Shown one piece after another: positions 2,767 to 50,640 of a DNA stretch of 64,000 nt. The notes under the pieces are model-generated. The model was given only the letters and a program-made list of their open reading frames with translations, was not told the DNA's origin and ran no database searches. Positions within the stretch are counted from its first letter, which is position 1, and every line of letters starts with the position of its first letter. The stretch spans positions 186,001-250,000 of IMG/VR virus record IMGVR_UViG_3300023174_000040. The stretch is one strand, 5' to 3'. A program made the position numbers and the translations under genes.

Positions 2767-3060
2767 TTATATTTCTATTTGATATTCTGGATCTTTGACC
2801 ATGCTGTTGTATTTATTAACAAAGAGCTTCAAGTCTTCTTCTGCGTCGTGTTCACTATTAGTGTGACTGTTAAATATTTTTCTCCACTTTGGAACTAATT
2901 GCTTTACATCTTTTTTTAGATCTTCTAATCCTTGTGGGTCGTTTTCTTTGCACCATTCAATTTGCTCCAACACATACATGGCTTCCCCGTATGCTTCATC
3001 TTCTGCCCAACCATCATTGTTATTTTCTTTAATTTCTAACCATTCATTAAATGTTTTCAT
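2767..3060 (-). CDS. Putative internal virion protein (CTS-like N-terminus)
   Basis: Starts MKTFNEWLEIKE; acidic, 97 aa. Confidence 0.7.
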   Translation of the reverse strand: MKTFNEWLEIKENNNDGWAEDEAYGEAMYVLEQIEWCKENDPQGLEDLKKDVKQLVPKWRKIFNSHTNSEHDAEEDLKLFVNKYNSMVKDPEYQIEI

Positions 3061-19545: not shown

Positions 19546-20778
19546 ATGAAATTCAAAAATTGGCTACTAAAAGAGGAAGAACAGTACCATGCAATGAGTG
19601 CTTCCATACCAATGCCATCAGAAGTAGATATTTTAAGTGACATATTTAAAAAATTTGGAGCAAAATTATACGCAGTTGGTGGCGCAATAAGAGATTACTT
19701 GTATCACATATTTCATCAAAAGCATGTTCCGTATAATCCGAAAGATGTTGACCTGGCAACGGATCAAACACCGGATCAGGTGATCAAAATACTGAGTTCT
19801 AAAGAAGCAGTAGAGAATGGAATAAAAGTTTTTCCAAAAGGAGAAAGTTTTGGTGTAATAAGTGCCATTATAAATGGAAAAGAATTCGAAATAGCAACAT
19901 TCAGGACCGAGTTTTACGATCCAGAAAAAGGAGATGGAAGAAGACCCGATAAAGTCTCATATAGCAGCCCGGGTTTGGATGCAAAACGCAGAGATCTCAA
20001 CATTAACGCCCTCTTTTATGATTTAAAAGATAAGCAAATCCGTGATTATAACCTCGATCACAAAGGAGAGGGCGAGGGATTCAAAGATATAAAGAATCTT
20101 TCTGTTAGAAGTGTTGGTGATCCCGAGGAAAGATTCAGAGAGGATAAACTTAGAGTGTTGAGACTTGTTAGATTCTTCTCTAGATTCAACGATGACATTA
20201 TTACAAGTCATTTAGATCAAAAAACAATAAGTGCAGTTGAGAAATTCAAAGATTTAAAAGGTGTTAGTGGAGAAAGAATTGCAAATGAATTTTTGTCGGG
20301 GTTGAGTAAATGCAAGAATATTAAAAATTATATTATGAACTATAAGGCGTTAGATTTATTGTCAACAATTTTTCCCGGATTGAATGTTGATTTAAGCTCA
20401 GAGATAGATTCTCACGATCCAATTGCGGTGATGAGTCTAATTTTTAAAAATAATGATCCAAATAAATTAAGATCAAAACTAAATGAATTAAAATATTCAA
20501 ATGAAATAGCAGACACAGTTGCGTTTATTCTAAAAGTAGCTTATGATTTAAATAAATCCAATATCATAAGAATGATAAGGATGAGGGATAATTTAAGCGA
20601 CAAGCTTAAAAAATCTTTTATGGAATTTGGTAAGATAAGTGGTCTACAGAGAGAGATCAAATATTTTTTAATGTATAAGCAAGTCACAAAATCAGAAGAT
20701 TATATGCATTTAAAAGGAAAAGAAATAAGCGACAGAATGAATGATGATGAATATTCTAATTTTAGAAATAATACATAA
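19546..20778 (+). CDS. cca: Class II CCA-adding tRNA nucleotidyltransferase with CTS-like N-terminus
   Basis: Motif A GGAIRD...DVD, flexible loop RTEFY...RRPD, motif B RRDLNINA, motif D EDKLR. Probable start MKFKNWLLKEE at 19546. Confidence 0.9.
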   Translation: MKFKNWLLKEEEQYHAMSASIPMPSEVDILSDIFKKFGAKLYAVGGAIRDYLYHIFHQKHVPYNPKDVDLATDQTPDQVIKILSSKEAVENGIKVFPKGESFGVISAIINGKEFEIATFRTEFYDPEKGDGRRPDKVSYSSPGLDAKRRDLNINALFYDLKDKQIRDYNLDHKGEGEGFKDIKNLSVRSVGDPEERFREDKLRVLRLVRFFSRFNDDIITSHLDQKTISAVEKFKDLKGVSGERIANEFLSGLSKCKNIKNYIMNYKALDLLSTIFPGLNVDLSSEIDSHDPIAVMSLIFKNNDPNKLRSKLNELKYSNEIADTVAFILKVAYDLNKSNIIRMIRMRDNLSDKLKKSFMEFGKISGLQREIKYFLMYKQVTKSEDYMHLKGKEISDRMNDDEYSNFRNNT

Positions 20779-32786: not shown

Positions 32787-33230
32787 ATGTTAAATTTTAA
32801 AGATTGGCTTATAAGTGAAGGTTCTAATCCTGGCGGCAAAACTGGTTTGTATCCATTGGGATACGGTGGAATAGGATTATACCCGCCCCAGTGGTACCTC
32901 ACAAGAAGTGCGGATGCAATCTTTTACCTGTCCGTAGACGAAAGAATCTACAATTCAACAGATAAGACATCGTTTGATATAACTCATATACCCGGGGAGT
33001 CAAATACAAAATTAAATAGCGGCGAGTCTGGTTTGTGGAGTATAAGGGGCATAGGTGGTGAATCCACTTCACCAAAAATCAATAAAGATGGATTCTCGGC
33101 AAAATATGGAGAAGGAAAGCCTTGGAGCATAAAGAAGATACCCGGAAAACCTTCTTACACAAAAAACAAAGATTTTGTCCCAGATTCAGGAGACGGCGGC
33201 ATATGGAGCATAAAACATATTAAAAAGTAG
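32787..33230 (+). CDS. CTS-bearing hypothetical protein with internal repeats
   Basis: Starts MLNFKDWLISE; four (W/F)(S/D)IxxIxG repeats. Confidence 0.7.
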   Translation: MLNFKDWLISEGSNPGGKTGLYPLGYGGIGLYPPQWYLTRSADAIFYLSVDERIYNSTDKTSFDITHIPGESNTKLNSGESGLWSIRGIGGESTSPKINKDGFSAKYGEGKPWSIKKIPGKPSYTKNKDFVPDSGDGGIWSIKHIKK

Positions 33231-35330: not shown

Positions 35331-37616
35331 TTATGTCTTTACTATTACGGAGGTAATGCTTGTAGGACCTAATTTAAAAATTTGAATAGATTTTATATTA
35401 TTCTTTAAATATTCTTTTTCTTCTTCATCTAAATAATCTGATATTATTTCTTTTTTATCTATAAAATTTTCCAACAATTCCAATGTAGTGATTTTTGTCG
35501 GATCTCCCCAACCCCAAACATCACGTTTTTCTGGTATTTTCACCTCTATGCTAGAATGCAGATCTTCTATTATAAATAGCCCTCCACTCTTTAATGATTT
35601 CATAAAAGAAGCAAAGGTTATCTGTTGGTCATGTATATTGTGAGAACCATCATCTATAATGATGTCGTATTCCCTTAATTTAGCAGCATAGTCGGAAACA
35701 AGTTCTTTCTTGGATTGATCCAACCAGTCTATAGTTATTCTCTCCAAATCTCTCAATTGATGTCTCACAATATCCAGTCCTAAAATTTGAGCATTTTTAA
35801 AATAATCACGCCAAACCCTTAGCGAATTTCCAGGCTCCCATCCTGCTTCCTTTAAAAAACCACCAATTCCAATTTCACAAACAAGCTTCACATTGTCTTT
35901 TATTGGGTAAAAAAATTCTTCGTAAACAGATTCATAGTAATTGTGAGTAAAATCTTTGTCGGTGGGGTATTTTTTAGAGATATCCGAAAGACTCTTGTGG
36001 GAGAAATCTTTTTTGCCTAATACCAATTTTTTTCCCTCTGGGATTATCATGGTTTCATTTTTATAATTAACAACCAAGCTCTTGAAGACTCCTGGATTTG
36101 GATCTCCAAACAATTCGTTTCCAACGACAATTGATAAACTTCCATTTATCATTTTTCTAGTCAGAATATCTTTAACATCTTTGCCGCCATAATTAGCGCT
36201 ATGAAGATCTTCATTAGAGTTAGAAAGATCTTCATTGGCAAAAGTTTTATCTTCTAAGCTAGTCTTTTCTATTTGAGAAGGACTAACTCGTTTTTTAATA
36301 ACAGATGTCACACTCGATAATTCTTCTCCCCGCTCATACAATAATTTACAATAATCAATATTGTTTTTAAGATATTCTTTATCGGCATCAGAGATGTAAT
36401 CTGACTGGACGTTGTTGTTTAATAATATTAAATTTTGAAGCATCTCAAGAGTGGTAGTTTTATTAGGATCTCCCCAATTAAACATTTGCTTCCCAGACAT
36501 CTTAGCTTCATGACTGGTCTGTAGGTTCTCTATAATAAATAACCCGCCTGGTTTTAGTTTCCTAAAAAGTTTGGCAAAAGTTATTTGTTGATCTCTCATT
36601 TTATGAGAAGCATCATCCAATATGACATCAAAATCTTCTTGAGTTAAAGCAAATTTCTCAAGATCTTCTTCTTTGCTTTGATCCATCTGGACAAAGTTAA
36701 TTCTCTTTTCATTAATTTTTATTGGGTTAATGTCACATCCAATAATTTCGGCATTATTGAAAAAGTCACGCCACATTTTAAGAGACTCGCCATCTGTGCC
36801 TATTTCACAAAATCTTTTTAAATTTTCTTTTATTGGATTGAATAAATCTTCATAATAATTAGAAATATACTTATGAGATGATTCTTTATCAGTATGGTAA
36901 AATTCCGATATGTCTGCTAAGCTCTTATTGTTGGGGTCCATTTTTATATTGAATACATCATAATAGATTTTATCTATTTTTCTATTTCTTATATGTCCGT
37001 ATCCAAAGGCATGAAAAATAAAATTTCCATCATTGTATTCACGCCAATTTAAACTTCTGTTGGTTATTATCTTGACTTTATTCTTAACATTGGAACTTCT
37101 ATCGTAGAGAACAGTTAAACAAGTTTGATCGTGCCAAAGATTGTTTTTAAAATAACCTTCTTGATTATTGTTTGTTGACAAAGATGAACAATCTCCGCCC
37201 CTCAAATAATTTCCAGCTTCCCACCAATCATTCATGAAGTTTCTGGACCATTCAGAGTTCTTAAACAATAGAACTCCAGCATTCATTTTGCTGTGTGAGC
37301 TATAATCCTCTGTTGCTATTAGATCAAAGTCATCATCTATAAATTCTTCTATTCTTATTGTATTATCTGAGACAACGGCATCCATATCTAAAAATAAAAC
37401 ATAATCACAATCATACTTTTCCATCACTTCTAGTATTAATTTGGGCTTAGCCCAAGTATGCGCCCTGTCTTCTATATAGGTTTTTATCTTATCTGTGTCT
37501 TTCTCAACATGATAGGTATACCCTTTTTCTTCACAGTACTTTTTGTTTATTTCCTCTGAAAATTTTCCATAAGATAGATTCTTTGTATAAAATTGAGCAA
37601 TTACTATTTTTTTCAT
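35331..37616 (-). CDS. Fusion: GT34 (MNN10/GMA12-like) glycosyltransferase, SAM methyltransferase, lectin-like module and second SAM methyltransferase
   Basis: WAKP...LFLDMDAV...NAGV...DQT, then two TDK...EIG...SL..WRD.F.NA.I.G.DI...DQS...I.DD.SH...GGLFIIE domains resembling MycE/TylE-type sugar O-methyltransferases. Confidence 0.8.
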   Translation of the reverse strand: MKKIVIAQFYTKNLSYGKFSEEINKKYCEEKGYTYHVEKDTDKIKTYIEDRAHTWAKPKLILEVMEKYDCDYVLFLDMDAVVSDNTIRIEEFIDDDFDLIATEDYSSHSKMNAGVLLFKNSEWSRNFMNDWWEAGNYLRGGDCSSLSTNNNQEGYFKNNLWHDQTCLTVLYDRSSNVKNKVKIITNRSLNWREYNDGNFIFHAFGYGHIRNRKIDKIYYDVFNIKMDPNNKSLADISEFYHTDKESSHKYISNYYEDLFNPIKENLKRFCEIGTDGESLKMWRDFFNNAEIIGCDINPIKINEKRINFVQMDQSKEEDLEKFALTQEDFDVILDDASHKMRDQQITFAKLFRKLKPGGLFIIENLQTSHEAKMSGKQMFNWGDPNKTTTLEMLQNLILLNNNVQSDYISDADKEYLKNNIDYCKLLYERGEELSSVTSVIKKRVSPSQIEKTSLEDKTFANEDLSNSNEDLHSANYGGKDVKDILTRKMINGSLSIVVGNELFGDPNPGVFKSLVVNYKNETMIIPEGKKLVLGKKDFSHKSLSDISKKYPTDKDFTHNYYESVYEEFFYPIKDNVKLVCEIGIGGFLKEAGWEPGNSLRVWRDYFKNAQILGLDIVRHQLRDLERITIDWLDQSKKELVSDYAAKLREYDIIIDDGSHNIHDQQITFASFMKSLKSGGLFIIEDLHSSIEVKIPEKRDVWGWGDPTKITTLELLENFIDKKEIISDYLDEEEKEYLKNNIKSIQIFKLGPTSITSVIVKT

Positions 37617-39035: not shown

Positions 39036-39776
39036 ATGACTTCTGTGGTAGTTTACATAATAAACGGTAATCTAAATTACCATAAAATGGCTCTTAATAG
39101 CATCAAAATGCTTAGAAAATTCAACAAAAACATAAGAATAATATGTTTTTGCACACATGATGAGACCATGTTTCCAGAAGAATTGATGGTTGAAACAAAG
39201 TATGTGAAGAACATAGACCCAGAATACTTCCCAGCAAACAAACAATATCTAGCCGATTTGGACTTTGACAATATATTTTACATAGATAGTGACACTTTTA
39301 TATTTGATGATATAGAAAAAATAATAAATAAATACCCAGAAGATATTGTGGGCTGTGAGAACAAGTGGGCCTATAGTGCAGACTTTAAATTATTTAAGCC
39401 CATTAATTCAGGCGTGCTATTGTTTAGAAATGGATCTAACAAAAAAATATACAAAGACTTTAATGATAAGCTCAATAAAATAAAAGAAACCCACCCCGAA
39501 CTATGGGTTTGGCTTGAGAGATATAATAAATGGGTGAGGGAAGAATTCCTAATGAGTCAAATAGTTCATGATGATAATATAAATAAAAATTATTTTAAAA
39601 GAAATCATGTTAAGATACCAGAAAATATCAATGACTTTGAATATATGGATGCGATAATATTCCATACATACACACACAATTGGGAAAGATTGCTAAAATT
39701 CAAAAATGTTAAAAGAAAAGTTTTGAGGCCAAAATTCAAATTAAACTCATATATATTTCATCATGAGCTTATTTAA
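39036..39776 (+). CDS. Glycosyltransferase (GT8-like, GT-A fold)
   Basis: FYIDSDT (DxD), INSGVLLF, IFH. Confidence 0.7.
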   Translation: MTSVVVYIINGNLNYHKMALNSIKMLRKFNKNIRIICFCTHDETMFPEELMVETKYVKNIDPEYFPANKQYLADLDFDNIFYIDSDTFIFDDIEKIINKYPEDIVGCENKWAYSADFKLFKPINSGVLLFRNGSNKKIYKDFNDKLNKIKETHPELWVWLERYNKWVREEFLMSQIVHDDNINKNYFKRNHVKIPENINDFEYMDAIIFHTYTHNWERLLKFKNVKRKVLRPKFKLNSYIFHHELI

Positions 39777-42678
39777 AAATTACGTAGAGAGTCAAGAAAA
39801 TCTTGTCGGTGGTCCTGGCATACAATTGCTTAAATCCACATTTGATGGAATGTTCAGCAGAGGAGCCCCAGTAGAATATGATGATACAGGATTTAATAAG
39901 CCTGATTTTATGTCTTTTAAGAGAATAACTAGCGATCCAAAATATCATGAAGACACCATACCCGTTGCAATGGCAAATAATATTTTATCAATATTAAACA
40001 GATATAAAAAGACCCAAGTAACTCATTATGAAGATATCAAGGCAGCAGTTAATAAAGACATAAAAGACTCATTGTCGCTCCATGATCAAGAAGATGACAA
40101 AATAACAATTGATAACAATGCTCCTAAACAATACGGCAAGGTGAAAGTTTTAATTCCCGGAGGCATAGATAAAGCTCTATCGAGGAGAATAGAAGCGATA
40201 ATAGTACAAAAAAAGAATCTCCAAAAAACTTTAAATAAATTTGGAAAACATCAATATGAAGCATGGCGATACTTCAGTCAAGATAAAAACACACTAGATA
40301 CATACTATGTTTCGCCCGAAGTCATTGATGAGATAGTGGAACTAGTAGCGGGTGAGAAAAAGATAGGCGTTAAAAAAATAGGAGCATCGGCCGCAGTTGC
40401 CGCCACGGGAATAAACACCGGATCATCCTCAGATGTTAATGTTATAGGAGTAGAAGAAACCCAGAGATATGGCAAAAGGCTTGCCATACAGTTTAATGTT
40501 CCGTTTGAAAAAAGTAAAGCCTTATTTGATGCGGTTAAGGCAGCAGGACTTTCTCCAAGTGGAATGGCATACGAAAGAAACCCAACAAGATTCTTATTAT
40601 CATTGGATAGAAAGATTCACGACCAAGTAATCAAAAAGTTCAGTGAATTTGGAATAGATGCCAAACCAATAGATGATTTTGTGGAAAAGAACCAATTATC
40701 AGTTCAATCTGCGGACGATCCTTCAGAAGAAGAAAAACCAACAAAAGGATCCGAGAGTGCGCCTACCAGTGAGAGAATAGAGTTTACAGATCCTTCCAAG
40801 GGAAGAGACGATAAACTTCATATAAAAATATTATACACAAGAGTATCTCCTCAACAAAAAGAGTTCCTTAGGGAACTTGTGCAATACACATTTCCAAATT
40901 ACGAATGGGATAGAGACAACTATTCTTATATCGTTAGGGGTAATTTTAAACAATATGTATCTTTTGGTGCAACACTTAAAAAATTCGGTTACATGTTTGA
41001 AATAACAGACAATTACACGCAGAACCCAAATAGTCTTAAACTAATCCTACAAACTAAACTTAAAAATGGCGGAGTCAAAAAGACAAAATACGAAGGGGAA
41101 GTTCCAGAAGGATTAAAAGATAAAATAGAAGAAAAACTACCTGAATCTAAGTTTGAATTATATGATCAGCAAAAAGATGGAGTGACCTTCTTGTACGGCA
41201 GACATCACGCAATACTTGGTGATGAAACAGGATATGGAAAAACTGCAATGCTTATAAGTGCTGCGGAGTTGAAGATGCAAGACACTCCTGGCGCAAAAAC
41301 TCTTGTGATTACATTGAAATCGGTTCAACAGCAGTGGGTAGATGAGATAAAAAATGTTGTAGGAGATAAATCCGAAATCTCAACTGATGCATTGAATCCA
41401 AAGAAGTGGACCGTTCTGTACTACGACAATTTTTCAAGTGGAAAACAAGTGGATAATGTTGTCAAGTCAGTCAGCGGGACAAATTTTGAAATAGCAATAT
41501 TTGATGAACTTCACAAACTAAAACACAGCACGTCCAAAAGAAGCCAGAACATACTCGTCGCAACTCAGAACATACCTTATAAATGGGGCGCCAGCGCAAC
41601 AATAAGTGCAAACAAACCAATGGACGTAAAGAATCAATTGGTTATGATCGGCCACCCACTTGGCTCCATAAAAGAAGGAAAGTTTAAAAAAGATTTTGCG
41701 GGCATGGTGCCCGGTGGTTATGGCGGAAGTTATGTTGAGGGAACATTTAGAGATAAGATCAAAGCCGCCGAGAAACTAAATCGATGGTTAAATCTATCAG
41801 GAGTCTATGTCAGAAGAACAAAGAATGAATTAAGAGAAATGCCCAATCTTGAAGTTAACGCATACACAACTGACATAGACACATCGGAATTTAGTAAGAA
41901 ATTAAAAGAAAAACTCAAGGCTTATAAGGATCCCAATTTAGCAATATCAGAATTAATAGCCTCGAGAGAAATCCTTGCTCATCTAAAAGTGGATTCCACA
42001 GTAGATAAAGCCTTGAAAATAATAAATTCAAATAAAGAAAAATCAGAAAACAATTACGCAGCAAGTAAAGTTGTCATATTTACAAACTTCGTTCAATCCG
42101 GTGAACAAATAAACAACAAGTTATCAGCTAAATTAAAAGAAATTAATCCTAATTTTAAAGTAATAACATATCTTTCTAGTACAAAGAAAGCAGAAAGAGA
42201 AAAGGTTAAAGAACTATTTACAAATGATCCTAATGCAAAAGCACTTGTAATGAGTATGAAAATGGGTGGAACTGGGATAAGTTTTCCCAACGCAGCTCAG
42301 AATATGATCGTTAATGACTTTGATTGGACTCCTGAAAGCTCTGAGCAGAGTGAGGGAAGAATATACAGAATCAACACAAACCACTCAGTTAAGATAGATT
42401 ATACACTAGCACCGGGCCTAGACACCGAAATCTATGAAGCAGTTCAGCGCAAAAGGAAGCTTGCAGAAATTATCCAAAGATACAGAAAAGAATACCAGGA
42501 TGTTCAGGCCGATGAAAAGCTGCTACAGAAGATAATTGATACTCAAGTAGAAGCAAATAAAATAGATGAAGAAATTAAGAATTTAATAGCAAAGGCTGCT
42601 TCCAAATCTATGGAGGAAGCGGTATCATTTAGCGATTATCTTAAAATATTAGAATTGGGATTCAACGCAGACACTTGA
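39763..42678 (+). CDS. SNF2/SWI2-family ATPase (SMARCAL1/HARP-like) with long N-terminal extension
   Basis: LGDETGYGKT, IFDELH, GASAT, GISF, QSEGRIYRIN; starts MSLFKNYVESQE. Confidence 0.9.
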   Translation: MSLFKNYVESQENLVGGPGIQLLKSTFDGMFSRGAPVEYDDTGFNKPDFMSFKRITSDPKYHEDTIPVAMANNILSILNRYKKTQVTHYEDIKAAVNKDIKDSLSLHDQEDDKITIDNNAPKQYGKVKVLIPGGIDKALSRRIEAIIVQKKNLQKTLNKFGKHQYEAWRYFSQDKNTLDTYYVSPEVIDEIVELVAGEKKIGVKKIGASAAVAATGINTGSSSDVNVIGVEETQRYGKRLAIQFNVPFEKSKALFDAVKAAGLSPSGMAYERNPTRFLLSLDRKIHDQVIKKFSEFGIDAKPIDDFVEKNQLSVQSADDPSEEEKPTKGSESAPTSERIEFTDPSKGRDDKLHIKILYTRVSPQQKEFLRELVQYTFPNYEWDRDNYSYIVRGNFKQYVSFGATLKKFGYMFEITDNYTQNPNSLKLILQTKLKNGGVKKTKYEGEVPEGLKDKIEEKLPESKFELYDQQKDGVTFLYGRHHAILGDETGYGKTAMLISAAELKMQDTPGAKTLVITLKSVQQQWVDEIKNVVGDKSEISTDALNPKKWTVLYYDNFSSGKQVDNVVKSVSGTNFEIAIFDELHKLKHSTSKRSQNILVATQNIPYKWGASATISANKPMDVKNQLVMIGHPLGSIKEGKFKKDFAGMVPGGYGGSYVEGTFRDKIKAAEKLNRWLNLSGVYVRRTKNELREMPNLEVNAYTTDIDTSEFSKKLKEKLKAYKDPNLAISELIASREILAHLKVDSTVDKALKIINSNKEKSENNYAASKVVIFTNFVQSGEQINNKLSAKLKEINPNFKVITYLSSTKKAEREKVKELFTNDPNAKALVMSMKMGGTGISFPNAAQNMIVNDFDWTPESSEQSEGRIYRINTNHSVKIDYTLAPGLDTEIYEAVQRKRKLAEIIQRYRKEYQDVQADEKLLQKIIDTQVEANKIDEEIKNLIAKAASKSMEEAVSFSDYLKILELGFNADT

Positions 42679-43070
42679 TTAATGGCCTGATTCATTTGAT
42701 CATTAATTGTGTTTCTTATAGCCTCAACTTCTCCCGGAGTGAGAGCCCTTGCAGATCCCAATAAATTTAACACAAAGTCACAATCAAGTTTCTTTAAAGA
42801 CCTTATGCCATTTTTCTTGTATTGTCTAAAAGCCGAAGTTACAAATTTGTCACTCTTTATATTCGGGTAACCAAACATAATATTATTACAATTTTTTTGT
42901 AATAAATTTCTTATATATGGGAAAGTTAAATAATGAACGTTGATTCCCCAAACATAAAAAGAGTCTGCGGCTGTTACCATTACATTTGGATTGGGATCAT
43001 GACCAGCCTTATGGAACATGTAGTTAAAAGAAACTAAACTACCTTTTTTAACATCCTGTATAAGGTCCAT
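42636..43070 (-). CDS. Putative DNA end-protector (T4 gp2-like)
   Basis: G..VSFNY...DP.P.V...WGINVHYL...R.LL resembles the gp2 core from memory. Confidence 0.45.
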   Translation of the reverse strand: MDLIQDVKKGSLVSFNYMFHKAGHDPNPNVMVTAADSFYVWGINVHYLTFPYIRNLLQKNCNNIMFGYPNIKSDKFVTSAFRQYKKNGIRSLKKLDCDFVLNLLGSARALTPGEVEAIRNTINDQMNQAINQVSALNPNSNILR

Positions 43071-43089
43071 CTTTCTCCTTTAATTGGAG

Positions 43090-43476
43090 TTACTTTAAAT
43101 ACTTTATCTTATATATTGTTCTGTAAGTTAGGGCTACAACCTCATCCATAATATTTTTGAGATGAGTGTCTTTATCATTCATGCTATCTTTTCCAAGCAT
43201 GAATATCTTTGCACAATCTTGGAGATAATCTTCAATATCAACATCAGAAATACTAATATCTCCATATCCGTTTAATATTCCATATTGACCTTGATATGTT
43301 TCAATAAAAGAATCCGCTAGATCCAGAATACCATCATAAAATCCATTTAAGGCTTTATGTTGACTATAACTTTTAGTTTGTAAATGGTGAACATGAGCCA
43401 CTTGGCGTGCCTCAAACATTTTCTGAACTAGGCTCTTGACGCTTTTAGAATTTTTATAATCATTTAAACTTATCAT
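43090..43476 (-). CDS. Ferritin/Dps-like four-helix protein (DUF5856-like)
   Basis: AHVHHLQTKSYSQHKALNGFYD...DSFIETYQG..G...LKNIMDE...Y.IKYLK. Probable start 43476. Confidence 0.7.
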   Translation of the reverse strand: MISLNDYKNSKSVKSLVQKMFEARQVAHVHHLQTKSYSQHKALNGFYDGILDLADSFIETYQGQYGILNGYGDISISDVDIEDYLQDCAKIFMLGKDSMNDKDTHLKNIMDEVVALTYRTIYKIKYLK

Positions 43477-43477
43477 T

Positions 43478-43984
43478 TTAATACCCATTGTAAACTTTAG
43501 AGGAATAATCTCCGGATGCACCACCAAACAACTTAGTTGAGTAGTCTGTTCCTTGTGACCTGACCATTAATTTAATGTTTTCAGGATTCTTTTCATATTG
43601 ATATTTGGCACTCATAGTGAAGAATTTTTTAAGTTCAGCACACATGTATTCAATTATATTTTTTGCACAGTCATCTTCTGTTGCATCTTTTTGTCCCATG
43701 AGATTATTATATATTTTCTCAAAGTCCAGCAGATATGGCTTTCCATAAGGATGAGTATTCGTCTTGTTTTGAACCTTGAATGCTATAGAATTAGCAATAG
43801 GATATACTCTAACTCCTTGAAAATAAGTATCGGGATTAGTTGAAAATACAAAAATATGAGGTTCTTGGTCCGAGTCAAATAGTTTATTTTTTATCTTTTG
43901 ACTCTTCAATAGATCACTTATTATCTTAAGCTTCCTATGAGCCTGCATTTCCGATTGGTTAATATAATCAAAAAATTTATACAT
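43478..43984 (-). CDS. Hypothetical protein (CTS-like start)
   Basis: MYKFFDYINQSE. Confidence 0.65.
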   Translation of the reverse strand: MYKFFDYINQSEMQAHRKLKIISDLLKSQKIKNKLFDSDQEPHIFVFSTNPDTYFQGVRVYPIANSIAFKVQNKTNTHPYGKPYLLDFEKIYNNLMGQKDATEDDCAKNIIEYMCAELKKFFTMSAKYQYEKNPENIKLMVRSQGTDYSTKLFGGASGDYSSKVYNGY

Positions 43985-43994
43985 TTTTAATCCC

Positions 43995-45305
43995 TTAGCA
44001 GTTCCTTAAAATTATTTCAGCTGCACTGGGCACACATCTCTGTATGACTTTCAAGTCTGATGGGTTACCGTTAAAGGGAAGTTCTTTAACAATGACTCCA
44101 GGAAAACTTGCAGCAGCCTGCTTAAGAGTATCTAGTTGAGCTGTCACAAATAAAATTCCATCTATCCTCTCAATGAAGTCGGACTCTCCTTTTTTAGGAA
44201 ATCCATTCTCATCAATCTCCCCTGTTTCATATAAATACTTGATCTTTAAATCTACATACGGAACAACATTTCCATCATCATCTATCATAGCCTCACTGTT
44301 TTCCGACTGTATTGTTCTTACTGACAATTTACCGTCCGCATAAGCGGTGCTTAGACAGCTTCCGAGATCTAAACCTACAAAATAAACGGTTCCATCTACT
44401 CCCACTACGTTTATGAGGAAAGATCTTTGCTTGAAATTATCTGCAATAGCTTCCATGATAACTCTTCTTCTTAGAACATCTCTCTCTTCTGGGCTGCCTT
44501 CTTCTAGCCTCTTGAGTTCGGGATCCTCCAAAAATCTTTCTGGGTCGTCTTCCCTTAAGGACCATTTTCCTAAATCTATCATTCCCCATTTTTCATTGAA
44601 TCTTGTTGATATCTTTATTGAATATGTTCTTTCATTGTAAATGATATCTTCGGAGTTTCCTCCACTGCCAACTTGGGCCGCACCTAATAATGAGGCCAAA
44701 TATTTTCTGTGAAGGTCACTCTTCATGCCCAGTGTTCCCTTCAGCTTAATAAATACATTTGTTAAATCAGAATAACTCTGAAGTGAGGTGAAGATGTGAT
44801 TGACAACTGACATCGAGGGATTATTGTTATCCAATTCCTGTCTGATAGATTTTCTTATATCCTTACCAGCTTTTTCTATATTAGAATTTTGTCTTAAAAA
44901 AAGAATCTGTAAATTGTCTTCAACAAACTTTCTTGGATAAGCCTCTAAATCATAATCCCTGATTTTATGAATATCATTTAATAAAAGACTTGTGTCGCCT
45001 TTAACTAGATTTTTAAAATAGCTTATTTTCCAAGTTTCAAAATCTTCTGATTCCTCTTGTTCTTCTGGGATGTCGGGAGATTGTGGTTCTTGCGATAAAT
45101 CTTGCGGAGAATCTTGTTTTGGGAGTTCTATCTCTGTCTCCTCTGGGGCCCCATCTGTATTTTGGTCCTGTGGTGGTTCTTCGGAGGTGTTGTTTTGCAT
45201 CACCACCTGATTGCCGCCAGTAGCATCGGAAGGAGGCTGTCCTCCTGCGGCTTCGCCTGGATTTCCAAGTTCTTCATTAAACCAATTTAAAGTATTAATT
45301 TTCAT
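43995..45305 (-). CDS. Hypothetical, probably virion/head-associated protein
   Basis: 436 aa; MKINTLNWFNEE followed by an acidic Pro/Glu-rich tract. Confidence 0.7.
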   Translation of the reverse strand: MKINTLNWFNEELGNPGEAAGGQPPSDATGGNQVVMQNNTSEEPPQDQNTDGAPEETEIELPKQDSPQDLSQEPQSPDIPEEQEESEDFETWKISYFKNLVKGDTSLLLNDIHKIRDYDLEAYPRKFVEDNLQILFLRQNSNIEKAGKDIRKSIRQELDNNNPSMSVVNHIFTSLQSYSDLTNVFIKLKGTLGMKSDLHRKYLASLLGAAQVGSGGNSEDIIYNERTYSIKISTRFNEKWGMIDLGKWSLREDDPERFLEDPELKRLEEGSPEERDVLRRRVIMEAIADNFKQRSFLINVVGVDGTVYFVGLDLGSCLSTAYADGKLSVRTIQSENSEAMIDDDGNVVPYVDLKIKYLYETGEIDENGFPKKGESDFIERIDGILFVTAQLDTLKQAAASFPGVIVKELPFNGNPSDLKVIQRCVPSAAEIILRNC

Positions 45306-45768
45306 CTTTTGCTTCTTTCTTTGCTTTATTTATCGCTTCTAGTAACTGTCTTTTATTGTTTCCTGAATTTATATTTATTGTATTATTTTGATTGGCTGCT
45401 AAGTATTTAGGGAAGGTATCCTTATCTTTTAACTTTATTCTTGTCATTAAATCTGCCATTTTAGCCATTTTATCCGCTACATCGCTTTTTATCTTAACCA
45501 AACTTACAAGAGCTTCTTTGCTTGCACTGGTGCTGTCGCCCTCATTTATTACGAGATCGGCAAAATTACCTATAAATTCATCTATTTGTTTTCTATCTTC
45601 TCTTATATTATTTAGAATCTCGCTGTAGACTCCAGCCAATTCTTCATCAGAAACTATGTGAGAGAGATCATTTTGATTCTGAACAGACGGAAGGTCTACG
45701 TTCATTTGAGGTATTAATTCTTTTGCATCATCTATTTGACTTATTATAATTTGATCTTGATTTTCCAT
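45295..45768 (-). CDS. Hypothetical helical protein
   Basis: 157-aa ORF with NNNTININ-type tail; position could fit a packaging or head gene, but this is not confirmed. Confidence 0.65.
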   Translation of the reverse strand: MENQDQIIISQIDDAKELIPQMNVDLPSVQNQNDLSHIVSDEELAGVYSEILNNIREDRKQIDEFIGNFADLVINEGDSTSASKEALVSLVKIKSDVADKMAKMADLMTRIKLKDKDTFPKYLAANQNNTININSGNNKRQLLEAINKAKKEAKDEN

Positions 45769-45817: not shown

Positions 45818-46093
45818 ATGGTCGAAAAAAGAAAAAATCAATCTGGGGACTTGAGTCGCATCGAGCACAAAATCGAGCATTTTGAAGATAAAATAAAAGA
45901 AATGTCCTCGGAGATGGATTCTTTCTCAAAGAAAATTCAAGAATTTGAAATTAAAATGGAAGGAATTAATCTTAGGACATCAAGATCTCAACAAAATTGG
46001 GATCAACTGATTGATTTTATAGTCAAGATATTCTGGGTGGTTGTTGCTTCATATCTATTGTATAAATTGGGAATACAAAGCCCTTCAGTGTGA
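45818..46093 (+). CDS. Coiled-coil protein with C-terminal TM helix (XhlA/holin-like architecture)
   Basis: Heptad-rich N-terminus, then LIDFIVKIFWVVVASYLLYKLG. Confidence 0.6.
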   Translation: MVEKRKNQSGDLSRIEHKIEHFEDKIKEMSSEMDSFSKKIQEFEIKMEGINLRTSRSQQNWDQLIDFIVKIFWVVVASYLLYKLGIQSPSV

Positions 46094-46138: not shown

Positions 46139-47344
46139 ATGGGAAAATTTCAAGATTACGTTTTATACAAAGAGAACAACTACAAAGAGAACAATATTCC
46201 GGTAGTTTCAAAAGTTAAATTGGCTAGGAATCCAGGAGTAGAAGATTTCCAACCATTCGTAATCGATAAAGACAACCACCCCAGTTTAAGATTGCTTATA
46301 AAAGCTTTCGAAAATAGCCCACAAATAGGTGTTGGTTACACCACCATGGATAAAACAGATGGTGAGGTTGAACCAAAACTTAAAAAGAAAGTCGTCTACT
46401 TAACAGGTGGGGCAGTTCGTGATCATCTAAAAGGAAAGACCCCGAGAAACTATGATCTTGCAACAGATGCCACATCAAGCGAAATTAAATTAATTTTAAA
46501 GGGAAATGGTTTTGAGGAAACTCAGACTCCGAGAAGTAACAAGAGTTTCTTTGCCAGTAGGATGGATGATAAAAATAAGCCCGTAGAATTCACAGTTGTT
46601 ATTAACGGAGAAAACTTTGAATTATCTCCTTTGTCAAAATCCATTAAGAATAGGAATTTAAATGTTGATGGATTTTCAGCAACATCAAGCTTAGAAGACG
46701 ATGCAGCATCAAGAGACTTTACAATAAATGCAATGTATATTCCACTTAAAAATAGTGAAGGAGAAAACACAGAACTACTTGATGTTTATGGTGGTGCTCA
46801 TCATCTTAAAAATGGTCAAATAATCTCTATCGGGAAGTTCTCAAAAAGAGTTGAAGATGACCCAATGACAGCACATAGATATATAAGAATGCAAGCCAGA
46901 TACGGAAATGAAGACATCCCTGAAGATCACATCGAATCTATGGGAAAAATAAACGATCTAAATAAAAACTATAAAAGGGAATACATTCTTGGTCTCGAGA
47001 ATCCCGAAATAAATGACAGAAAATATTTGGATATGTACAAAAACACAGGTCTTTTAAATACAGTTTATCCTTTAGATAATTTAGCTGTGGACGACGTGCC
47101 AGAAAAAGCTTACAATGATAGATTTTTAACTTCTGCTTGGTTGATGAAAGATAAAGCAATAGAACAAGTTAAATTTGCTTTACTATCAGCGGGGTGGGAA
47201 TCAAGAGAAGTAGAAGATATCGCACATCTTATCAGCATGTATCAAGCAGAAAGAAATAATTACCAGCAGGTTTCAACTCCTTGCGGACTTTCTGATAACA
47301 AAGTTAATAAGTGGAAAAAGATATATTCAACATCAGCCTGGTGA
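46139..47344 (+). CDS. Divergent class II tRNA-nucleotidyltransferase paralog with altered catalytic motifs and CTS-like N-terminus
   Basis: GGAVRD present, but DxD reads NYD, RRD reads SRD(FTINA) and EDxxR reads DDPMT; starts MGKFQDYVLYKE. Confidence 0.8.
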   Translation: MGKFQDYVLYKENNYKENNIPVVSKVKLARNPGVEDFQPFVIDKDNHPSLRLLIKAFENSPQIGVGYTTMDKTDGEVEPKLKKKVVYLTGGAVRDHLKGKTPRNYDLATDATSSEIKLILKGNGFEETQTPRSNKSFFASRMDDKNKPVEFTVVINGENFELSPLSKSIKNRNLNVDGFSATSSLEDDAASRDFTINAMYIPLKNSEGENTELLDVYGGAHHLKNGQIISIGKFSKRVEDDPMTAHRYIRMQARYGNEDIPEDHIESMGKINDLNKNYKREYILGLENPEINDRKYLDMYKNTGLLNTVYPLDNLAVDDVPEKAYNDRFLTSAWLMKDKAIEQVKFALLSAGWESREVEDIAHLISMYQAERNNYQQVSTPCGLSDNKVNKWKKIYSTSAW

Positions 47345-48196
47345 TTCTAGGACCAGCTTTTTAGCATTGTTTAGAATCTTGTCTATGCTTCCCGCAGGTA
47401 TCTTATCTTTGAAGTGATTGTAAGCTCCTTTTATCATTTCATGTTCCGGGTTGCATGTTAATTCAAGCCAACCTACAAAATAATTCCAAATTCTATCCTC
47501 TAGAACAAGAGGGTATTTAACGCCTTCGGGCCTACCAAACCGGTGAACCCACTTTAATTGAGGGATACAAATTGCTTTGCCCCCACGTGTTCTAAATTTT
47601 TCATGAATATAACCTTCTTCTCCGCCAAATCCCTTAAAGTGCTGGTTGAATCCGACCCAATTCTTGGTCTCGCATGAAAAAACACCAAGACCATGCATGA
47701 GAATCTCAAAAGGCTCACCTTTTTTCAAGTTTTCATGATCTGTGTGCCAGGTCCCATACATGGAATGATTCCAGACCGGAGAAAAGCTTGTAGATTCATT
47801 TCGCAAATCGTCATAAAGAAGAGGTCCCTGAACTATGTTTTTGCAATCAGGGTTTTGTTCATAATATTTCAAAAGACTTTCTATTGCACCCTTTTGAAAT
47901 AAAACGTGGCAATCCATTGATATGGTATACTTGCCCTTTGCTTGCTTGAATATTTCATTTCTTACTGCAGTGCTTTTCTTTTCTTCATATGGGATATATC
48001 TTCCTCTGGCCCAACTATTAACAAAAGATTTAACCGGTTCGGCATGTTTACCTTTTGGGTTATTATCTATGACTAAAAATTCAACCTGATCAGTGTTGCA
48101 TACTTCGTGATACATGCGAAGTGCTTGGAGAGAGAAATACACTCCATCATAATCATCATAGGTCGCCATTCCGATAGTCAATAATTTTTCACTCAT
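47333..48196 (-). CDS. GT2-family glycosyltransferase
   Basis: LTIGMATYD...VIDNNP...RNEIF...ISMDCH...F.GFGGEE. Confidence 0.8.
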   Translation of the reverse strand: MSEKLLTIGMATYDDYDGVYFSLQALRMYHEVCNTDQVEFLVIDNNPKGKHAEPVKSFVNSWARGRYIPYEEKKSTAVRNEIFKQAKGKYTISMDCHVLFQKGAIESLLKYYEQNPDCKNIVQGPLLYDDLRNESTSFSPVWNHSMYGTWHTDHENLKKGEPFEILMHGLGVFSCETKNWVGFNQHFKGFGGEEGYIHEKFRTRGGKAICIPQLKWVHRFGRPEGVKYPLVLEDRIWNYFVGWLELTCNPEHEMIKGAYNHFKDKIPAGSIDKILNNAKKLVLESPG

Positions 48197-48238: not shown

Positions 48239-49930
48239 TCAAGATTCTTTTCTTAATTCTGCCGAGTAGTGTTCGAATCTATTGTGTTCGGTTGGTGTCA
48301 TGAGCAAAAGTCCACCTTGAATATTACCTTTTTTAGTTTCTTGGTAAATATAACTCATCCAAGTTTGTTCGTATGAATGAGCCCAAGTAGTTTCTAAAAA
48401 CATTTTTTTGTTTCCTTCTCTGGAGACTACTTGGGGCCAATTGCAATAGTAAACTTCTCCATTTGTATATGGAACTCCTCGATGACTTTTTATGTTATTA
48501 TAAACAGTCTTGGGAGCATTTGGATCGGTTCCTAATTGAGGAAGCTTTTTATTATTTGGCCAATACTTTTCTCTGACATCTTGGGACACGTTATACCAAC
48601 TCCATTGAGTTCCATTGTCTCCAAAAAACTCAGTATAGTTTAATTTTAAAAAATCAAAACTTTCTTTGTTTGCTATTTCCATTGACTTAGAATAAAGATT
48701 CTCTGTTATTCTATTGAAGCCATTTTTACAAAGAGGTTCATTTTTATTTGAATAGAAGAACATATCATCTTCGAAAAACCAATGAAAATCAAATTCGTTT
48801 TGTTCCGCATGATCTGCTATGAATTGTCGGCCACCACATATCCCCAAGTTATCTTTTTTAATATGCTCGAAATTATATTCTTCACATAGTTTGATGTATT
48901 CATCATTCTTCGACAAGTCTGTTGAGTTATTGAGAAGAAATCTTTTCTTGGGTTTTATAAGAAAATCAGAGTCGTATGCTTCCATGCTTTTTAATAATGT
49001 TCTAAATTGATTGGGGCTGTTAAAAGTTATTACGTAAAGCGCAGTGTTATCTGTATCTGATTGACAATTTAATTTATTTTCTTTTACCTTCTCGTTTGTG
49101 AATTCTTTAAGATTCTCAAAGAAAGGATAAACTAAACCGTTTCCCGGTATTTCGTATCTATGAATCAAAGCAGGGTGCCTATGGCATAGTATTGTAAATA
49201 AACACTCATCTGCGCCCATATTCCCCTCTCTGAGGGTTGATTCCATAACCCCATAATAAAGGCTATTAATTTGAGATACTAGTTCTTTTCTTCCGCCAAA
49301 GAATCCCCCTCTTGCAACATAATCTACATAATTAATACCGCAATATTTTGCCATAGCATTTCTTTCAAAGCCATGTATTTCATCGTTAGCGGTATATGGA
49401 TATGTTATGTGCACAAACTTCTTTTGAATTTTACAATAATTATCAAGATTATCGAGAACCTTATCATGTGTAAAAGTTCCCTGGTGGACTGTATTTGTCA
49501 ATCCTCCATCTATCCAAAAGAAATAATCAGATTTAAATGGATTGTAAATGGACGAATCATTTAACATGAACATTTTTGTGAACATCATTGGATTGTAAAA
49601 TTCCAATGCCGCCTGAGGTGATTCTCTAAGCCAACCCGCTCTAGATAGCCATTCCTCATTTTTTCTTATTTCTTGTATTTTATCAAAGAAAGGATTCCAA
49701 GTTTTAAAGTCTTCATTTTCTTTAAAATATATTCTTGTTGGCTTATCCTTCCTTATGTCCAAAACTTCCTGCTCTAGGAATTTTGGAATCCAAATGCACA
49801 TTTGAGCATCAACTTCCAACATCTCAAAAAATCTGGCCTTGTAGTCGCTAAAGTTTCTTTGTGCCCAGCCGTCTAAGCTTTCTCGATTAAGATCCCAAAG
49901 ACCTGTGACAAGGGTAATATTTTTATTCAT
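48239..49930 (-). CDS. HtrL/YibB (WlaTC)-like glycosyltransferase fused to a second GT-like domain
   Basis: ITLVTGLWD...K.FML...FFWIDGG...GGFFGG...DE; C-terminal FFEDD domain. Confidence 0.7.
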   Translation of the reverse strand: MNKNITLVTGLWDLNRESLDGWAQRNFSDYKARFFEMLEVDAQMCIWIPKFLEQEVLDIRKDKPTRIYFKENEDFKTWNPFFDKIQEIRKNEEWLSRAGWLRESPQAALEFYNPMMFTKMFMLNDSSIYNPFKSDYFFWIDGGLTNTVHQGTFTHDKVLDNLDNYCKIQKKFVHITYPYTANDEIHGFERNAMAKYCGINYVDYVARGGFFGGRKELVSQINSLYYGVMESTLREGNMGADECLFTILCHRHPALIHRYEIPGNGLVYPFFENLKEFTNEKVKENKLNCQSDTDNTALYVITFNSPNQFRTLLKSMEAYDSDFLIKPKKRFLLNNSTDLSKNDEYIKLCEEYNFEHIKKDNLGICGGRQFIADHAEQNEFDFHWFFEDDMFFYSNKNEPLCKNGFNRITENLYSKSMEIANKESFDFLKLNYTEFFGDNGTQWSWYNVSQDVREKYWPNNKKLPQLGTDPNAPKTVYNNIKSHRGVPYTNGEVYYCNWPQVVSREGNKKMFLETTWAHSYEQTWMSYIYQETKKGNIQGGLLLMTPTEHNRFEHYSAELRKES

Positions 49931-49971: not shown

Positions 49972-50640
49972 TTATGGTTTACCCGGAGCTTTGTTATTCC
50001 ATTGACCACTTTGGAATTTTGCCATGGAGTCAGAAACTGGTGCTGGCACTGCCACAGCGGCTGGAACACTGATTGTAATCCCTGACTTTTTATTTTTAAC
50101 TAGCTGTTGTCCCACTATTATTGCGTTTGGTTTATACTTAACGGATTTGTCTATTTTAAGCTCAGAATAAATTTTTTGAATAAGAGATTCAATGCTACCT
50201 ATAGTGGCTGGGTCACCTTGTATATGGACATGTAAGGACAATTCTTGTGGAAGAGATTTAATACTAGATTGTAACTTTCTTTCTTCTACAAGTCTGTCAT
50301 ATGTATTTTGTTCGATAAGAACGGCTGCCTCTTTAATATTGAAGAGTTGCTGGTGTCCTTGGGAGGTATCTACATCATCAAAATTGTATGATGGGGCCGA
50401 TCCTCTACTGCACGATTTGCCTCCGCAAGCACCATATTTCAAGGGATTAACAATTGTGTTTTTAATACCACCAACAGTTTTTTGTCCACGACCTACTTTC
50501 TGACCTCGGTAAGCATCGATCCAATCGTTGTCTCTTCCTTGTAGGGTATTGGCGGTTAGACCGGCCGCAGCGCCCAAACCGGTTGCAATCTGATTTAAGA
50601 AGGATTCGTTTGCTTCAATCCAATCAATGAATTTTTTCAT
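49972..50640 (-). CDS. CTS-bearing hypothetical protein
   Basis: MKKFIDWIEANE followed by a glycine-zipper-like segment, IATGLGAAAGLTA. Confidence 0.7.
   Translation of the reverse strand: MKKFIDWIEANESFLNQIATGLGAAAGLTANTLQGRDNDWIDAYRGQKVGRGQKTVGGIKNTIVNPLKYGACGGKSCSRGSAPSYNFDDVDTSQGHQQLFNIKEAAVLIEQNTYDRLVEERKLQSSIKSLPQELSLHVHIQGDPATIGSIESLIQKIYSELKIDKSVKYKPNAIIVGQQLVKNKKSGITISVPAAVAVPAPVSDSMAKFQSGQWNNKAPGKP

Follow-up and report, generated by a model that had tools for sequence, protein, structure and literature searches.

A conserved homologue of CCA-adding enzymes without the canonical catalytic residues, and with a T4-like capsid-targeting motif, in a huge phage

What becomes of a tRNA-nucleotidyltransferase gene when the residues required for nucleotide addition are replaced but the reading frame is kept? 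This question is raised by a locus of a freshwater huge phage, studied here in a 64,000-nucleotide window (positions 186,001 to 250,000 of the IMG/VR record IMGVR_UViG_3300023174_000040). The original prediction, made from the sequence alone, described a second CCA-like gene, full-length and CTS-tagged, with Asn for the first Asp of DxD, SRD for RRD, DDPMT for EDxxR and no RxE flexible-loop signature. It proposed that the product could be a catalytically dead tRNA-binding decoy or shield, a partner of the active CCA enzyme or a relaxed-specificity RNA-tailing enzyme. The observation itself holds in every motif. The interpretation is only partly supported, as detailed below. The coordinates of the features discussed are listed in Table 1.

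Table 1. Features of the locus, in window coordinates
Position	Strand	Feature	Residues or size
46139..47344	+	Derived ('pseudo') class II tRNA nucleotidyltransferase homologue (P0001), intact ORF	401 aa plus stop
46139..46174	+	N-terminal T4-CTS-like peptide MGKFQDYVLYKE, followed by a variable linker	F4, Y7, V8 ... E12
46394..46822	+	PolyA_pol head domain	86-228
46406..46423	+	Motif A glycine loop GGAVRD, retained	G90-D95
46448..46456	+	N-Y-D (aac tat gat) in place of the catalytic DxD	N104-Y105-D106
46619..46621	+	Position of the conserved Glu of 'FEIATFR', taken here as the third carboxylate	E161
46634..46651	+	S-K-S-I-K-N, the clade-specific 'SKSxKS' motif, in place of the basic/acidic R-x-D/E motif and the start of the flexible loop	S166 (S166-K-S168), K170
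46709..46717	+	S-R-D in place of motif B RRD	S191-R192-D193
46856..46870	+	D-D-P-M-T in place of motif D EDxxR; templating Asp kept, templating Arg is Thr	D240-D241-P242-M243-T244
19546..20778	+	Second, canonical class II CCA-type gene (P0002 from Met28) with DVD, R-T-E, RRD and EDKLR intact; starts with the CTS-like peptide MKFKNWLLKE
45818..46093	+	Coiled-coil protein with a C-terminal hydrophobic segment (read from the translation), immediately upstream of P0001	91 aa
42636..45768	-	Divergently transcribed conserved block	four proteins, listed below
45295-45768	-	Protein of the block	157 aa
43995-45305	-	Protein of the block, CTS-like N-terminus across phages	436 aa
43478-43984	-	Protein of the block, CTS-like N-terminus across phages	168 aa
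42636-43070	-	Protein of the block, weak gp2-like 'DNA end protector' hit	144 aa
43090-43527		Unconserved ORF inside the block	145 aa

The frame of P0001 is free of internal stops under translation table 11, so that an alternative genetic code was not considered necessary, and the sequence AAGGTG lies 6 nt upstream of the ATG. The protein belongs to the class II nucleotidyltransferase superfamily, since its head domain matches the Pfam profile PF01743 (71.9 bits against a cut-off of 23, E = 8e-20). Its AlphaFold2 model is confident (pLDDT = 89.9) and similar to the human mitochondrial CCA enzyme 4x4w (Z = 25.2 over residues 25-401), with Z of about 22-24 to the bacterial poly(A) polymerase 3aqm and to the Geobacillus (Bacillus) stearothermophilus CCA enzyme 1miv. 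The head, neck and body of the seahorse-shaped class II fold are thus predicted. Yet the description of the protein as full-length requires a caveat: it stops at about residue 348 of 398 of the human enzyme and 323 of 395 of the G. stearothermophilus enzyme, and lacks the roughly 90-aa C-terminal tail domain that most members of its clade and solved class II enzymes have. This absence characterizes the subclade of the window protein, whereas a long clade member (P0036) covers the tail.

In alignments with solved CCA enzymes, the N-Y-D, S-R-D and D-D-P-M-T of the window protein correspond to their DVD, RRD and EDALR, respectively, and the GDGR-type flexible loop is absent. These replacements are not peculiar to one sequence. 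Among 148 relatives forming a single clade (SH-aLRT = 100, stem length 0.67), none has an intact DxD (NYD in 117, NYN in 22, GYD in 4, DYN in 2, DYH in 2 and SYD in 1), none has the Arg of the basic/acidic motif, none has the first Arg of RRD and none has the Arg of EDxxR, which is Thr in 119. Two further changes had not been listed by the original prediction. The Glu taken as the third carboxylate is present in the window protein but is found in only 39 of the 148 derived sequences, where the position varies freely (E, N, Y, S, R, D, F, H), against 17 of 19 canonical orthologues and 52 of 55 other class II enzymes; R250 is also relaxed in the clade. In contrast, GGAVRD, R192-D193 and K170 are invariant in the clade and D241 is conserved in 99%.

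The clade sits among syntenic orthologues that keep the canonical motifs. The latter occupy the same position in sister huge phages (loci L043, L045-L048, L050 and L052-L056 of our set of related loci), beside the same four conserved genes, share the N-terminal tag and N-terminal region, and are 33-39% identical to the window protein. They have DxD, the Glu of 'FEIATFR' (17 of 19), R-K-D, a GDGR-type loop, RRD and EDxxR, so one lineage lost the catalytic set once and kept the protein. The random decay that had been named beforehand as evidence against the prediction was not observed. The dN/dS ratio is 0.04-0.09 in derived pairs and 0.055-0.096 in canonical pairs, and an environmental strain differs from the window gene by 34 synonymous and 6 non-synonymous changes, with the motif codons untouched.

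The second question is whether the N-terminus is a targeting peptide. At the sequence level the CTS tag is confirmed: MGKFQDYVLYKE has the aromatic (i), aromatic (i+3), aliphatic (i+4)...Glu pattern of the T4 capsid targeting sequence MKTYQEFIAE, whose key residues are 4, 7, 8 and 10 (PMC9026906, PMC8442874). In the family, F4 is invariant and E17 nearly invariant, and the consensus is M-x-x-L-F-x-x-Y-x-x-L-R-E; canonical orthologues start with MRKTFLEYLSLKE or MKTFKEYILLKE. The pattern is shared by a set of unrelated proteins of the phage and is found at the N-terminus of 21 of 438 crude genes of the genome (roughly 5%; about 3.5 expected) and of 64 of 603 genes in related loci (4 expected). 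The genome also encodes a gp21-like protease (PF03420, E = 2.4e-28, at positions 289419-289841 of the genome), found as well in 3 of 5 related genomes, and a gp23-like capsid protein (PF07068, E = 2.9e-90). Nevertheless, capsid targeting in this uncultured phage rests on sequence analogy with T4, and the putative cleavage context of the window protein is Y-K-E rather than the L/I-x-E seen in most relatives. T4 internal proteins IPI, IPII and IPIII and Alt, which are capsid-targeted, processed by gp21 and injected, have comparable N-terminal peptides of about 10-12 aa, but their mature domains are unrelated to the protein studied here.

The genomic context is compatible with this view, although position next to tagged or structural genes is only circumstantial. 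The four proteins of the divergent block are present in 55-59 of 59 related loci and the 91-aa coiled-coil protein has a homologue in 32 of 59, while a tape-measure-like protein and baseplate genes lie downstream. Structural leads from the ESM Atlas for the 436-aa neighbour (restriction-endonuclease-like, 0.80) and the 157-aa neighbour (T4 DNA_Packaging, 0.82) are below the level that we would trust. A Pfam search of ten other tagged ORFs gave no informative family, PADLOC returned no hit for the protein or its two tagged neighbours, a promoter and terminator scan around the gene found no more sites than in shuffled sequences, and no RNA-seq run was found to hold the locus.

Taken together, these results are best explained, with moderate confidence, by a conserved pseudo-CCA-adding enzyme which keeps the class II scaffold but has lost the machinery for nucleotidyl transfer, and which descends from the canonical CCA-type enzyme found at the same locus in related T4-like huge phages. 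In this view the first metal-binding Asp, the third carboxylate (still a Glu in the window protein), the basic/acidic motif that positions the tRNA 3' end (PMC7014341), the flexible loop, the first Arg of RRD and the templating Arg of EDxxR were replaced together in one lineage and then fixed, while the Gly-rich loop, the ribose-reading Arg-Asp of motif B, the base-reading Asp of motif D and a new Lys/Ser-rich motif stayed invariant. It has been reported that an AxA variant of DxD is inactive and that the D and R of the human EDxxR tolerate no replacement in CCA-repair selections (PMC11784652). The most likely mode of action would therefore be non-catalytic binding, in the former active-site cleft, of an RNA 3' end (most plausibly the tRNA acceptor end) or of a nucleotide lacking the metal-triphosphate moiety. 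The protein would probably be loaded into the prohead, trimmed at the hydrophobic-x-Glu site and delivered to the host with the DNA. Since the tail domain anchors the tRNA elbow in class II enzymes, the tail-less form may recognise only the acceptor end, or generic RNA 3' ends. The intact frame, the class II architecture of the model, the motif counts, the monophyly of the clade, the purifying selection and the enrichment of the N-terminal pattern are established by the analysis; the loss of catalysis is inferred from residues only, a one-metal or otherwise altered catalytic centre cannot be excluded, and RNA or nucleotide binding, encapsidation, processing and delivery are likewise inferences.

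As to the three ideas of the original prediction, a non-catalytic RNA-end binder (decoy or shield) fits best, albeit by inference. An obligate partnership with the canonical enzyme is not supported, and a relaxed-specificity tailing enzyme is unlikely, because the metal ligands, the third carboxylate and four conserved arginines (that of the basic/acidic motif, the first Arg of RRD and the templating Arg of EDxxR, together with R250) are lost or relaxed together in the clade. The choice between a pseudo-enzyme and a new activity was the right frame, but the canonical orthologues at the same locus, the missing tail domain and the conserved block of similarly tagged, probably encapsidated proteins had been overlooked.

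Several alternatives may be considered. The one that survives best, although it seems unlikely, is a neo-functionalised enzyme, in which the remodelled pocket (N104, D106, D110, E150, R192-D193, D241, T244 and SKSxKS) would catalyse a different reaction, such as single-metal transfer of another nucleotide or cofactor, 3'-end trimming or pyrophosphorolysis, or modification of RNA or DNA ends. The substitutions are indeed specific and fixed rather than random (N104 94%, T244 80%, S166 86%, K170 100%), D106 is kept in 82%, E150 (on the neighbouring strand) and R141 are newly conserved, the remaining pocket residues are invariant, and selection is as strong as on active-looking relatives. Yet no member of the clade keeps both Asp of DxD, the third carboxylate varies and four arginines conserved in canonical enzymes are affected together, while no known class II member works without these residues (PMC11784652).

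It is more doubtful that the protein is a purely structural internal or scaffold-like cargo, the old fold serving as inert bulk or as a DNA-associated ejection protein without RNA or nucleotide ligand. The tag and the neighbourhood would agree with this, but invariance is concentrated in the former active-site motifs (GGAVRD, RD-T-N, D215-GG and D241-P242), which is hard to explain for inert cargo, and T4 internal proteins evolve fast (PMC9026906) whereas this family is highly conserved.

A regulatory or partner subunit of P0002, in the manner of the 'prozyme' pseudo-enzymes that activate an active paralogue, is very unlikely. Both genes occur in this genome and both carry the tag, and a P0002-type gene was found in 5 of 13 derived-type records and in 0 of 8 canonical-type records. 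Nevertheless, a derived-type genome rated 100% complete (533 kb) has only the derived gene, the two genes are 26 kb apart, and the proteins belong to different class II subfamilies, as P0002 falls outside the syntenic family in the tree. A structure prediction of P0001 (residues 20-401) in complex with P0002 (residues 28-437) scored 0.00 and speaks neither for nor against binding.

It is still less likely that this is an ordinary CCA-, CC- or A-adding enzyme or poly(A) polymerase, as database names ('tRNA nucleotidyltransferase/poly(A) polymerase') and the head-domain and fold matches would suggest, given the replaced motifs. NCBIfam equivalog and subfamily scores are far below cut-off (the best are pcnB, 69.7 against 305.65, and the CCA equivalog, 54.8 against 290), but so is that of the canonical P0002, which makes this criterion weak on its own. 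Finally, a decaying pseudogene, which the loss of catalytic residues and of the tail might evoke, is refuted by the selection data, by the intact frames of the 34 derived-type loci read as full ORFs, by the lengths of 393-648 aa of more than 140 derived sequences and by 49 invariant columns across 57 sequences.

Among known systems, class II CCA-adding enzymes (G. stearothermophilus 1MIV, human TRNT1 4X4W, Planococcus 6QY6) share the fold (Z = 20-25), GGxVRD, the 'RD' of motif B and the Asp of motif D, but not the replaced motifs or the N-terminal targeting-like peptide. Jumbo-phage CCA enzymes have been described more generally (Iyer et al. 2021, PMC7824862). Bacterial CC-adding enzymes and eukaryotic CC-adding variants are natural class II variants in which the flexible loop and/or the basic/acidic motif is deleted or mutated, changing function (PMC7014341); they keep the catalytic carboxylates, RRD and EDxxR and remain polymerases, whereas here the catalytic core itself is gone, judging from the residues. 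Pseudo-enzymes of the Pol-beta-type nucleotidyltransferase fold, such as the DZF domains of NF45/NF90 and MiD51, have also lost their catalytic carboxylates while being conserved and binding RNA or nucleotides non-catalytically, but they are eukaryotic, belong to other nucleotidyltransferase families and show no direct homology beyond the superfamily. Our literature searches found no paper on an inactive CCA-enzyme homologue in phages; the four-enzyme case of Acanthamoeba consists of active enzymes only, and the RaK2 paper did not address packaging of its CCA enzyme.

A more speculative possibility, unlikely on present evidence, is that the protein is an injected tRNA-end shield or decoy, a dead CCA-adding enzyme that would be packed into the capsid by the T4-like targeting peptide and delivered with the DNA. 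In the first minutes of infection it would cap or sequester tRNA 3'-CCA ends, or soak up a nucleotide signal, so that host abortive-infection toxins acting on tRNA acceptor ends (such as MenT/AbiEii-type nucleotidyltransferases and CapRel-type pyrophosphokinases) could not shut down translation. In that case, the canonical orthologues of sister phages would be the enzymatic repair version of the same injected counter-defence.

CCA-adding enzymes are textbook essential polymerases, and a conserved, catalytically stripped lineage of them was not described in the literature searched. More than 140 sequences from huge-phage contigs (up to 670 kb, from several metagenome sources) are automatically annotated as active 'tRNA nucleotidyltransferase/poly(A) polymerase'. 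The canonical orthologues at the same locus provide a clean natural experiment on how a template-independent polymerase is converted into something else. If the T4-like tag is functional, these huge phages pack tRNA-related proteins (canonical and dead CCA enzymes, plus an HD-like protein), an SNF2 helicase and many unknown proteins into their capsids, which would widen the concept of injected internal proteins and point to tRNA 3' ends as an early battleground of infection.

The gene of interest is a single uninterrupted ORF of 401 codons with AAGGTG lying 6 nt before its ATG. Pfam finds a PolyA_pol head domain at residues 86-228 (E 8e-20) and PHROGs calls the protein tRNA nucleotidyltransferase. 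Its alignment to solved class II enzymes fixes the correspondence of the motifs: N104-Y-D106 (aac tat gat) aligns to the catalytic D-V-D, S191-R-D193 to RRD and D240-D-P-M-T244 to E-D-A-L-R, whereas the basic/acidic (B/A) R-x-D/E motif that precedes the flexible loop is S166-K-S168 and the GDGR-type loop is missing. The original prediction of a full-length CCA-like gene in which the catalytic and specificity motifs are rewritten is therefore correct as an observation. Contrary to this protein, a second PF01743 gene (P0002) keeps DVD, R-T-E, RRD and EDKLR. In the protein under study, the linker after the N-terminal tag contains a 5-aa tandem duplication (K-E-N-N-Y-K-E-N-N) which is absent from the 83-86%-identical relatives P0004 and P0007. 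In addition, Ala108 is encoded with a C where all four environmental runs compared and nearly all relatives read T (Val108), which corresponds to a private variant or an assembly difference in the DLxTD segment just after the N-Y-D.

Positions in the window of the features considered in this section
Feature	Position	Strand
Derived PF01743 ORF	46139..47344	+
N104-Y-D106 codons	46448-46456	+
Tandem duplication in the linker	46169-46195	+
Ala108/Val108 variant	46461
Canonical PF01743 gene P0002, from its likely Met	19546..20778	+
ORFs starting with a T4-CTS-like peptide	2266-2763, 2767-3060, 9927-11213, 19546-20778, 23123-23944, 31580-32398, 32787-33230, 39763-42678, 43478-43984, 46139-47344, 49972-50640	-, -, -, +, -, -, +, +, -, +, -
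Tagged SNF2/DEAD-type helicase	39763-42678	+
Tagged 272-aa HD-like protein	31580-32398	-
Conserved block of four genes (157, 436, 168 and 144 aa)	42636-45768	-
Two giant DUF5122 proteins	5502-9005 and 13295-16387	+
Glycosyltransferase and methyltransferase cluster	35331-37616, 47333-48196, 48239-49930, 39036-39776	-, -, -, +
tRNA-Gln(ttg)	340-412	+
tRNA and tmRNA genes of the genome	113382-295179 (whole-record numbering)	

The window is made up of bases 186001-250000 of a 323-kb IMG/VR virus record (G000) with a CheckV completeness of 64% and 36% G+C. This genome encodes a T4 gp23-like major capsid protein (E 3e-90), a gp21-like prohead protease (E 2e-28), a baseplate-hub (Phage_base_V) protein and a tape-measure-like protein of 1843 aa, and it belongs to a T4-like huge phage. 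The locus is present in more than 15 freshwater or lake metagenomes from 2017 to 2025. The genome also has seven tRNA genes, one of them odd, and a tmRNA (tag GTVNYAMAA). None of the six tRNA genes that were checked encodes its 3' CCA, so phage tRNAs need a CCA-adding activity. Two giant proteins (1167 and 1030 aa) carry multiple DUF5122 beta-propeller repeats, one of them together with an F5/8 type C domain, and are probably receptor-binding or fibre proteins. The cluster of glycosyltransferase and methyltransferase genes (GT2, HtrL/YibB-like, and a GT34 plus SAM-MTase fusion) flanks the NTase gene only in the closest relatives (loci L003 and L004), so this region is variable.

A word-indexed search found 353 homologues, the best 120 of which (41-92% identity, nearly full coverage) all carry the same substitutions. 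In a set of 148 non-identical members of the derived clade, no sequence has an intact DxD (NYD in 117, NYN in 22, GYD in 4, DYN in 2, DYH in 2 and SYD in 1), the Glu of 'FEIATFR' is present in 39, and R250 is relaxed. The B/A Arg is found in 0 of 148 (Ser in 127), the first Arg of RRD in 0 of 148 (Asn in 110) and the Arg of EDxxR in 0 of 148 (Thr in 119). By contrast, G90, G91, R94, D95, R192, D193, T195, N197, D215, G219 and P242 are invariant, as is K170 inside a new 'L-S-K-S-x-K-S' motif, and D241 is conserved in 99%. Selection on these proteins is strong. The dN/dS of unsaturated pairs inside the clade is 0.04-0.09, indistinguishable from the 0.055-0.096 measured in canonical relatives. 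Similarly, a co-occurring environmental strain differs at 50 of 1301 positions and, of the 40 differences listed, 34 are synonymous, 6 are not, and none touches a motif codon. The random decay or frameshifts that would have contradicted the original prediction are thus not what is observed, and the gene is not a decaying copy.

IMG/VR holds 59 loci encoding relatives. In 55-59 of them the gene lies beside the same divergently transcribed genes of 157, 436, 168 and 144 aa, and in 45 of them the tape-measure-like giant protein lies within the 8-kb flanks. Among these conserved neighbours, the 436-aa protein has a tag followed by a G/P/Q-rich linker, the 144-aa protein weakly matches the T4 gp2-like DNA end protector and the 157-aa protein has a weak lead to the T4 small terminase (DNA_Packaging). 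Loci L043, L045-L048, L050 and L052-L056 have the orthologue at this position at 33-39% identity and with the same N-terminal region, but these orthologues keep DxD, FEIATFR-K-D, a GDGR-type loop, RRD and EDxxR. In the maximum-likelihood tree the derived proteins form one clade (SH-aLRT = 100, stem length 0.67) that joins two canonical-form groups inside a well-supported syntenic family (SH-aLRT = 99). So a canonical, locus-resident CCA-type enzyme lost its whole catalytic set once and was then maintained. Loci L057, L058, L060 and L061 show other partial states. The exhaustive HMMER search gives 39 clusters (at 50% identity) below E 1e-30, which cover both the derived and the canonical states.

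The AF2 model of the protein (57-sequence alignment, pLDDT 89.9) matches the human mitochondrial CCA enzyme at Z 25.2 over residues 25-401, and it also matches PAP I and the Geobacillus (Bacillus) stearothermophilus (Bst), T. maritima and A. aeolicus enzymes at Z 19-24. The protein ends at about residue 348 of 398 of the human enzyme and 323 of 395 of Bst. A 495-aa clade member (P0036, pLDDT 88.3) aligns to the very end of these enzymes, hence most clade members (450-650 aa) have the tail domain. The subclade of the protein studied here (393-414 aa; monophyletic, support = 100) has lost it, and the description of the gene as full-length is true of its frame but not of its architecture.

Catalysis by these proteins is very unlikely. 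In selections on the human enzyme, an AxA variant of DxD is the dead control, and the D and R of EDxxR accept no substitute for CCA repair (PMC11784652). The B/A motif positions the tRNA 3' end, and both this motif and the loop are needed for A-addition (PMC7014341). Six independent elements are changed in the derived proteins and the two remaining carboxylate positions drift (N-x-N, D-x-H, variable E161), from which a loss of nucleotidyl transfer is inferred. In class II enzymes, the Arg-Asp of motif B reads the ribose and the Asp of motif D reads the base amino group, and this is the part of the pocket that survives. A new conserved basic/Ser motif sits where the 3'-end-positioning element was. 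Such a pattern would be expected of a protein that still docks a nucleotide or an RNA 3'-terminal nucleotide without Mg-triphosphate, although this step is an inference.

The protein starts with MGKFQDYVLYKE, and the consensus of the family is M-K-x-L-F-x-x-Y-x-x-L-R-E followed by a variable low-complexity linker. The T4 capsid targeting sequence is MKTYQEFIAE (PMC8442874), in which residues 4 and 7 target and residues 8 and 10 direct gp21 processing (PMC9026906). The same aromatic(i), aromatic(i+3), aliphatic(i+4)...Glu pattern (M-x-x-F-K/N-x-W/F/Y-L/I ... E) begins 21 of the 438 crude genes of this genome, against 3.5 expected from its internal frequency, roughly 6 times the chance expectation, and most of these are followed by L/I-x-E. 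Examples are MKTFNEWLEIKE, MNFKEWIIKE and MKNFKEWLINEE, as well as the canonical CCA enzyme (MKFKNWLLKE), a 971-aa SNF2/DEAD-type helicase (MSLFKNYVESQE) and a 272-aa HD-like protein (MNFKLWLVESS...). The latter contains 'PEHHAEGDVFKHT' and has only weak Cas3-HD hits (E about 4e-4) and no Pfam hit; it may be an HD phosphohydrolase, a domain that in some bacteria is fused to the CCA enzyme for 3'-end repair. In 31 related loci the motif begins 64 of 603 genes, against 4 expected, including the canonical orthologues (MRKTFLEYLSLKE, MKTFKEYILLKE) and the conserved 436-aa and 168-aa neighbours. Since gp21- and gp23-like genes are present, encapsidation and delivery with the DNA is a reasonable hypothesis, but it remains unproven. 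If the tag is functional, a helicase would be among the encapsidated cargo. The number of unrelated ORFs that share the motif suggests an unusually large set of capsid-loaded proteins.

The relationship with the canonical enzyme was studied by counting the PF01743 genes in 21 records. The derived-type genome G001 (533 kb, rated 100% complete) has only the derived gene, whereas G000, G003, G004, G006 and G008 also have a P0002-type gene. Among the canonical-type records, the complete genomes G011, G013 and G014 have only the syntenic gene, while G012 and G016 carry an extra short (237-260 aa) NTase. This head-only PF01743 protein (loci L083 and L082, respectively) starts with MNIKLYRVGGFVRDEL and represents a third kind of NTase in this phage group. 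P0002-type genes thus occur in 5 of 13 derived-type records and in 0 of 8 canonical-type records, a trend compatible with functional replacement, although most records are fragments. An obligate partnership between both proteins is excluded by G001, and the prediction of their complex gave no verdict in either direction.

The sequence changes, their fixation under purifying selection, the canonical ancestry at the same locus, the missing tail in the predicted structure and the recurrence of the tag pattern are shown by these analyses, whereas the loss of catalysis, the binding of a ligand and the loading into the capsid are inferred. The interpretation offered by the original prediction is partly supported: its proposal of a catalytically dead tRNA-binding protein is in line with the mechanism favored here, but its suggestion of a partner of the active CCA enzyme does not hold as an obligate arrangement. 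The most likely mechanism, held with no more than even confidence, is the non-catalytic binding of RNA 3' ends or of a nucleotide by an encapsidated protein. Alternatively, a new catalytic activity remains possible, but it seems less likely. Public records call these proteins tRNA nucleotidyltransferase/poly(A) polymerase, and no paper describing such a lineage was found. The finding is real and more general than originally predicted, since it concerns a conserved clade of catalytically stripped class II CCA-enzyme homologues, as inferred from their residues, in T4-like huge phages. These proteins derive from a canonical orthologue at the same locus and carry a T4-type capsid-targeting-like peptide, and in this phage the tail domain is also missing.
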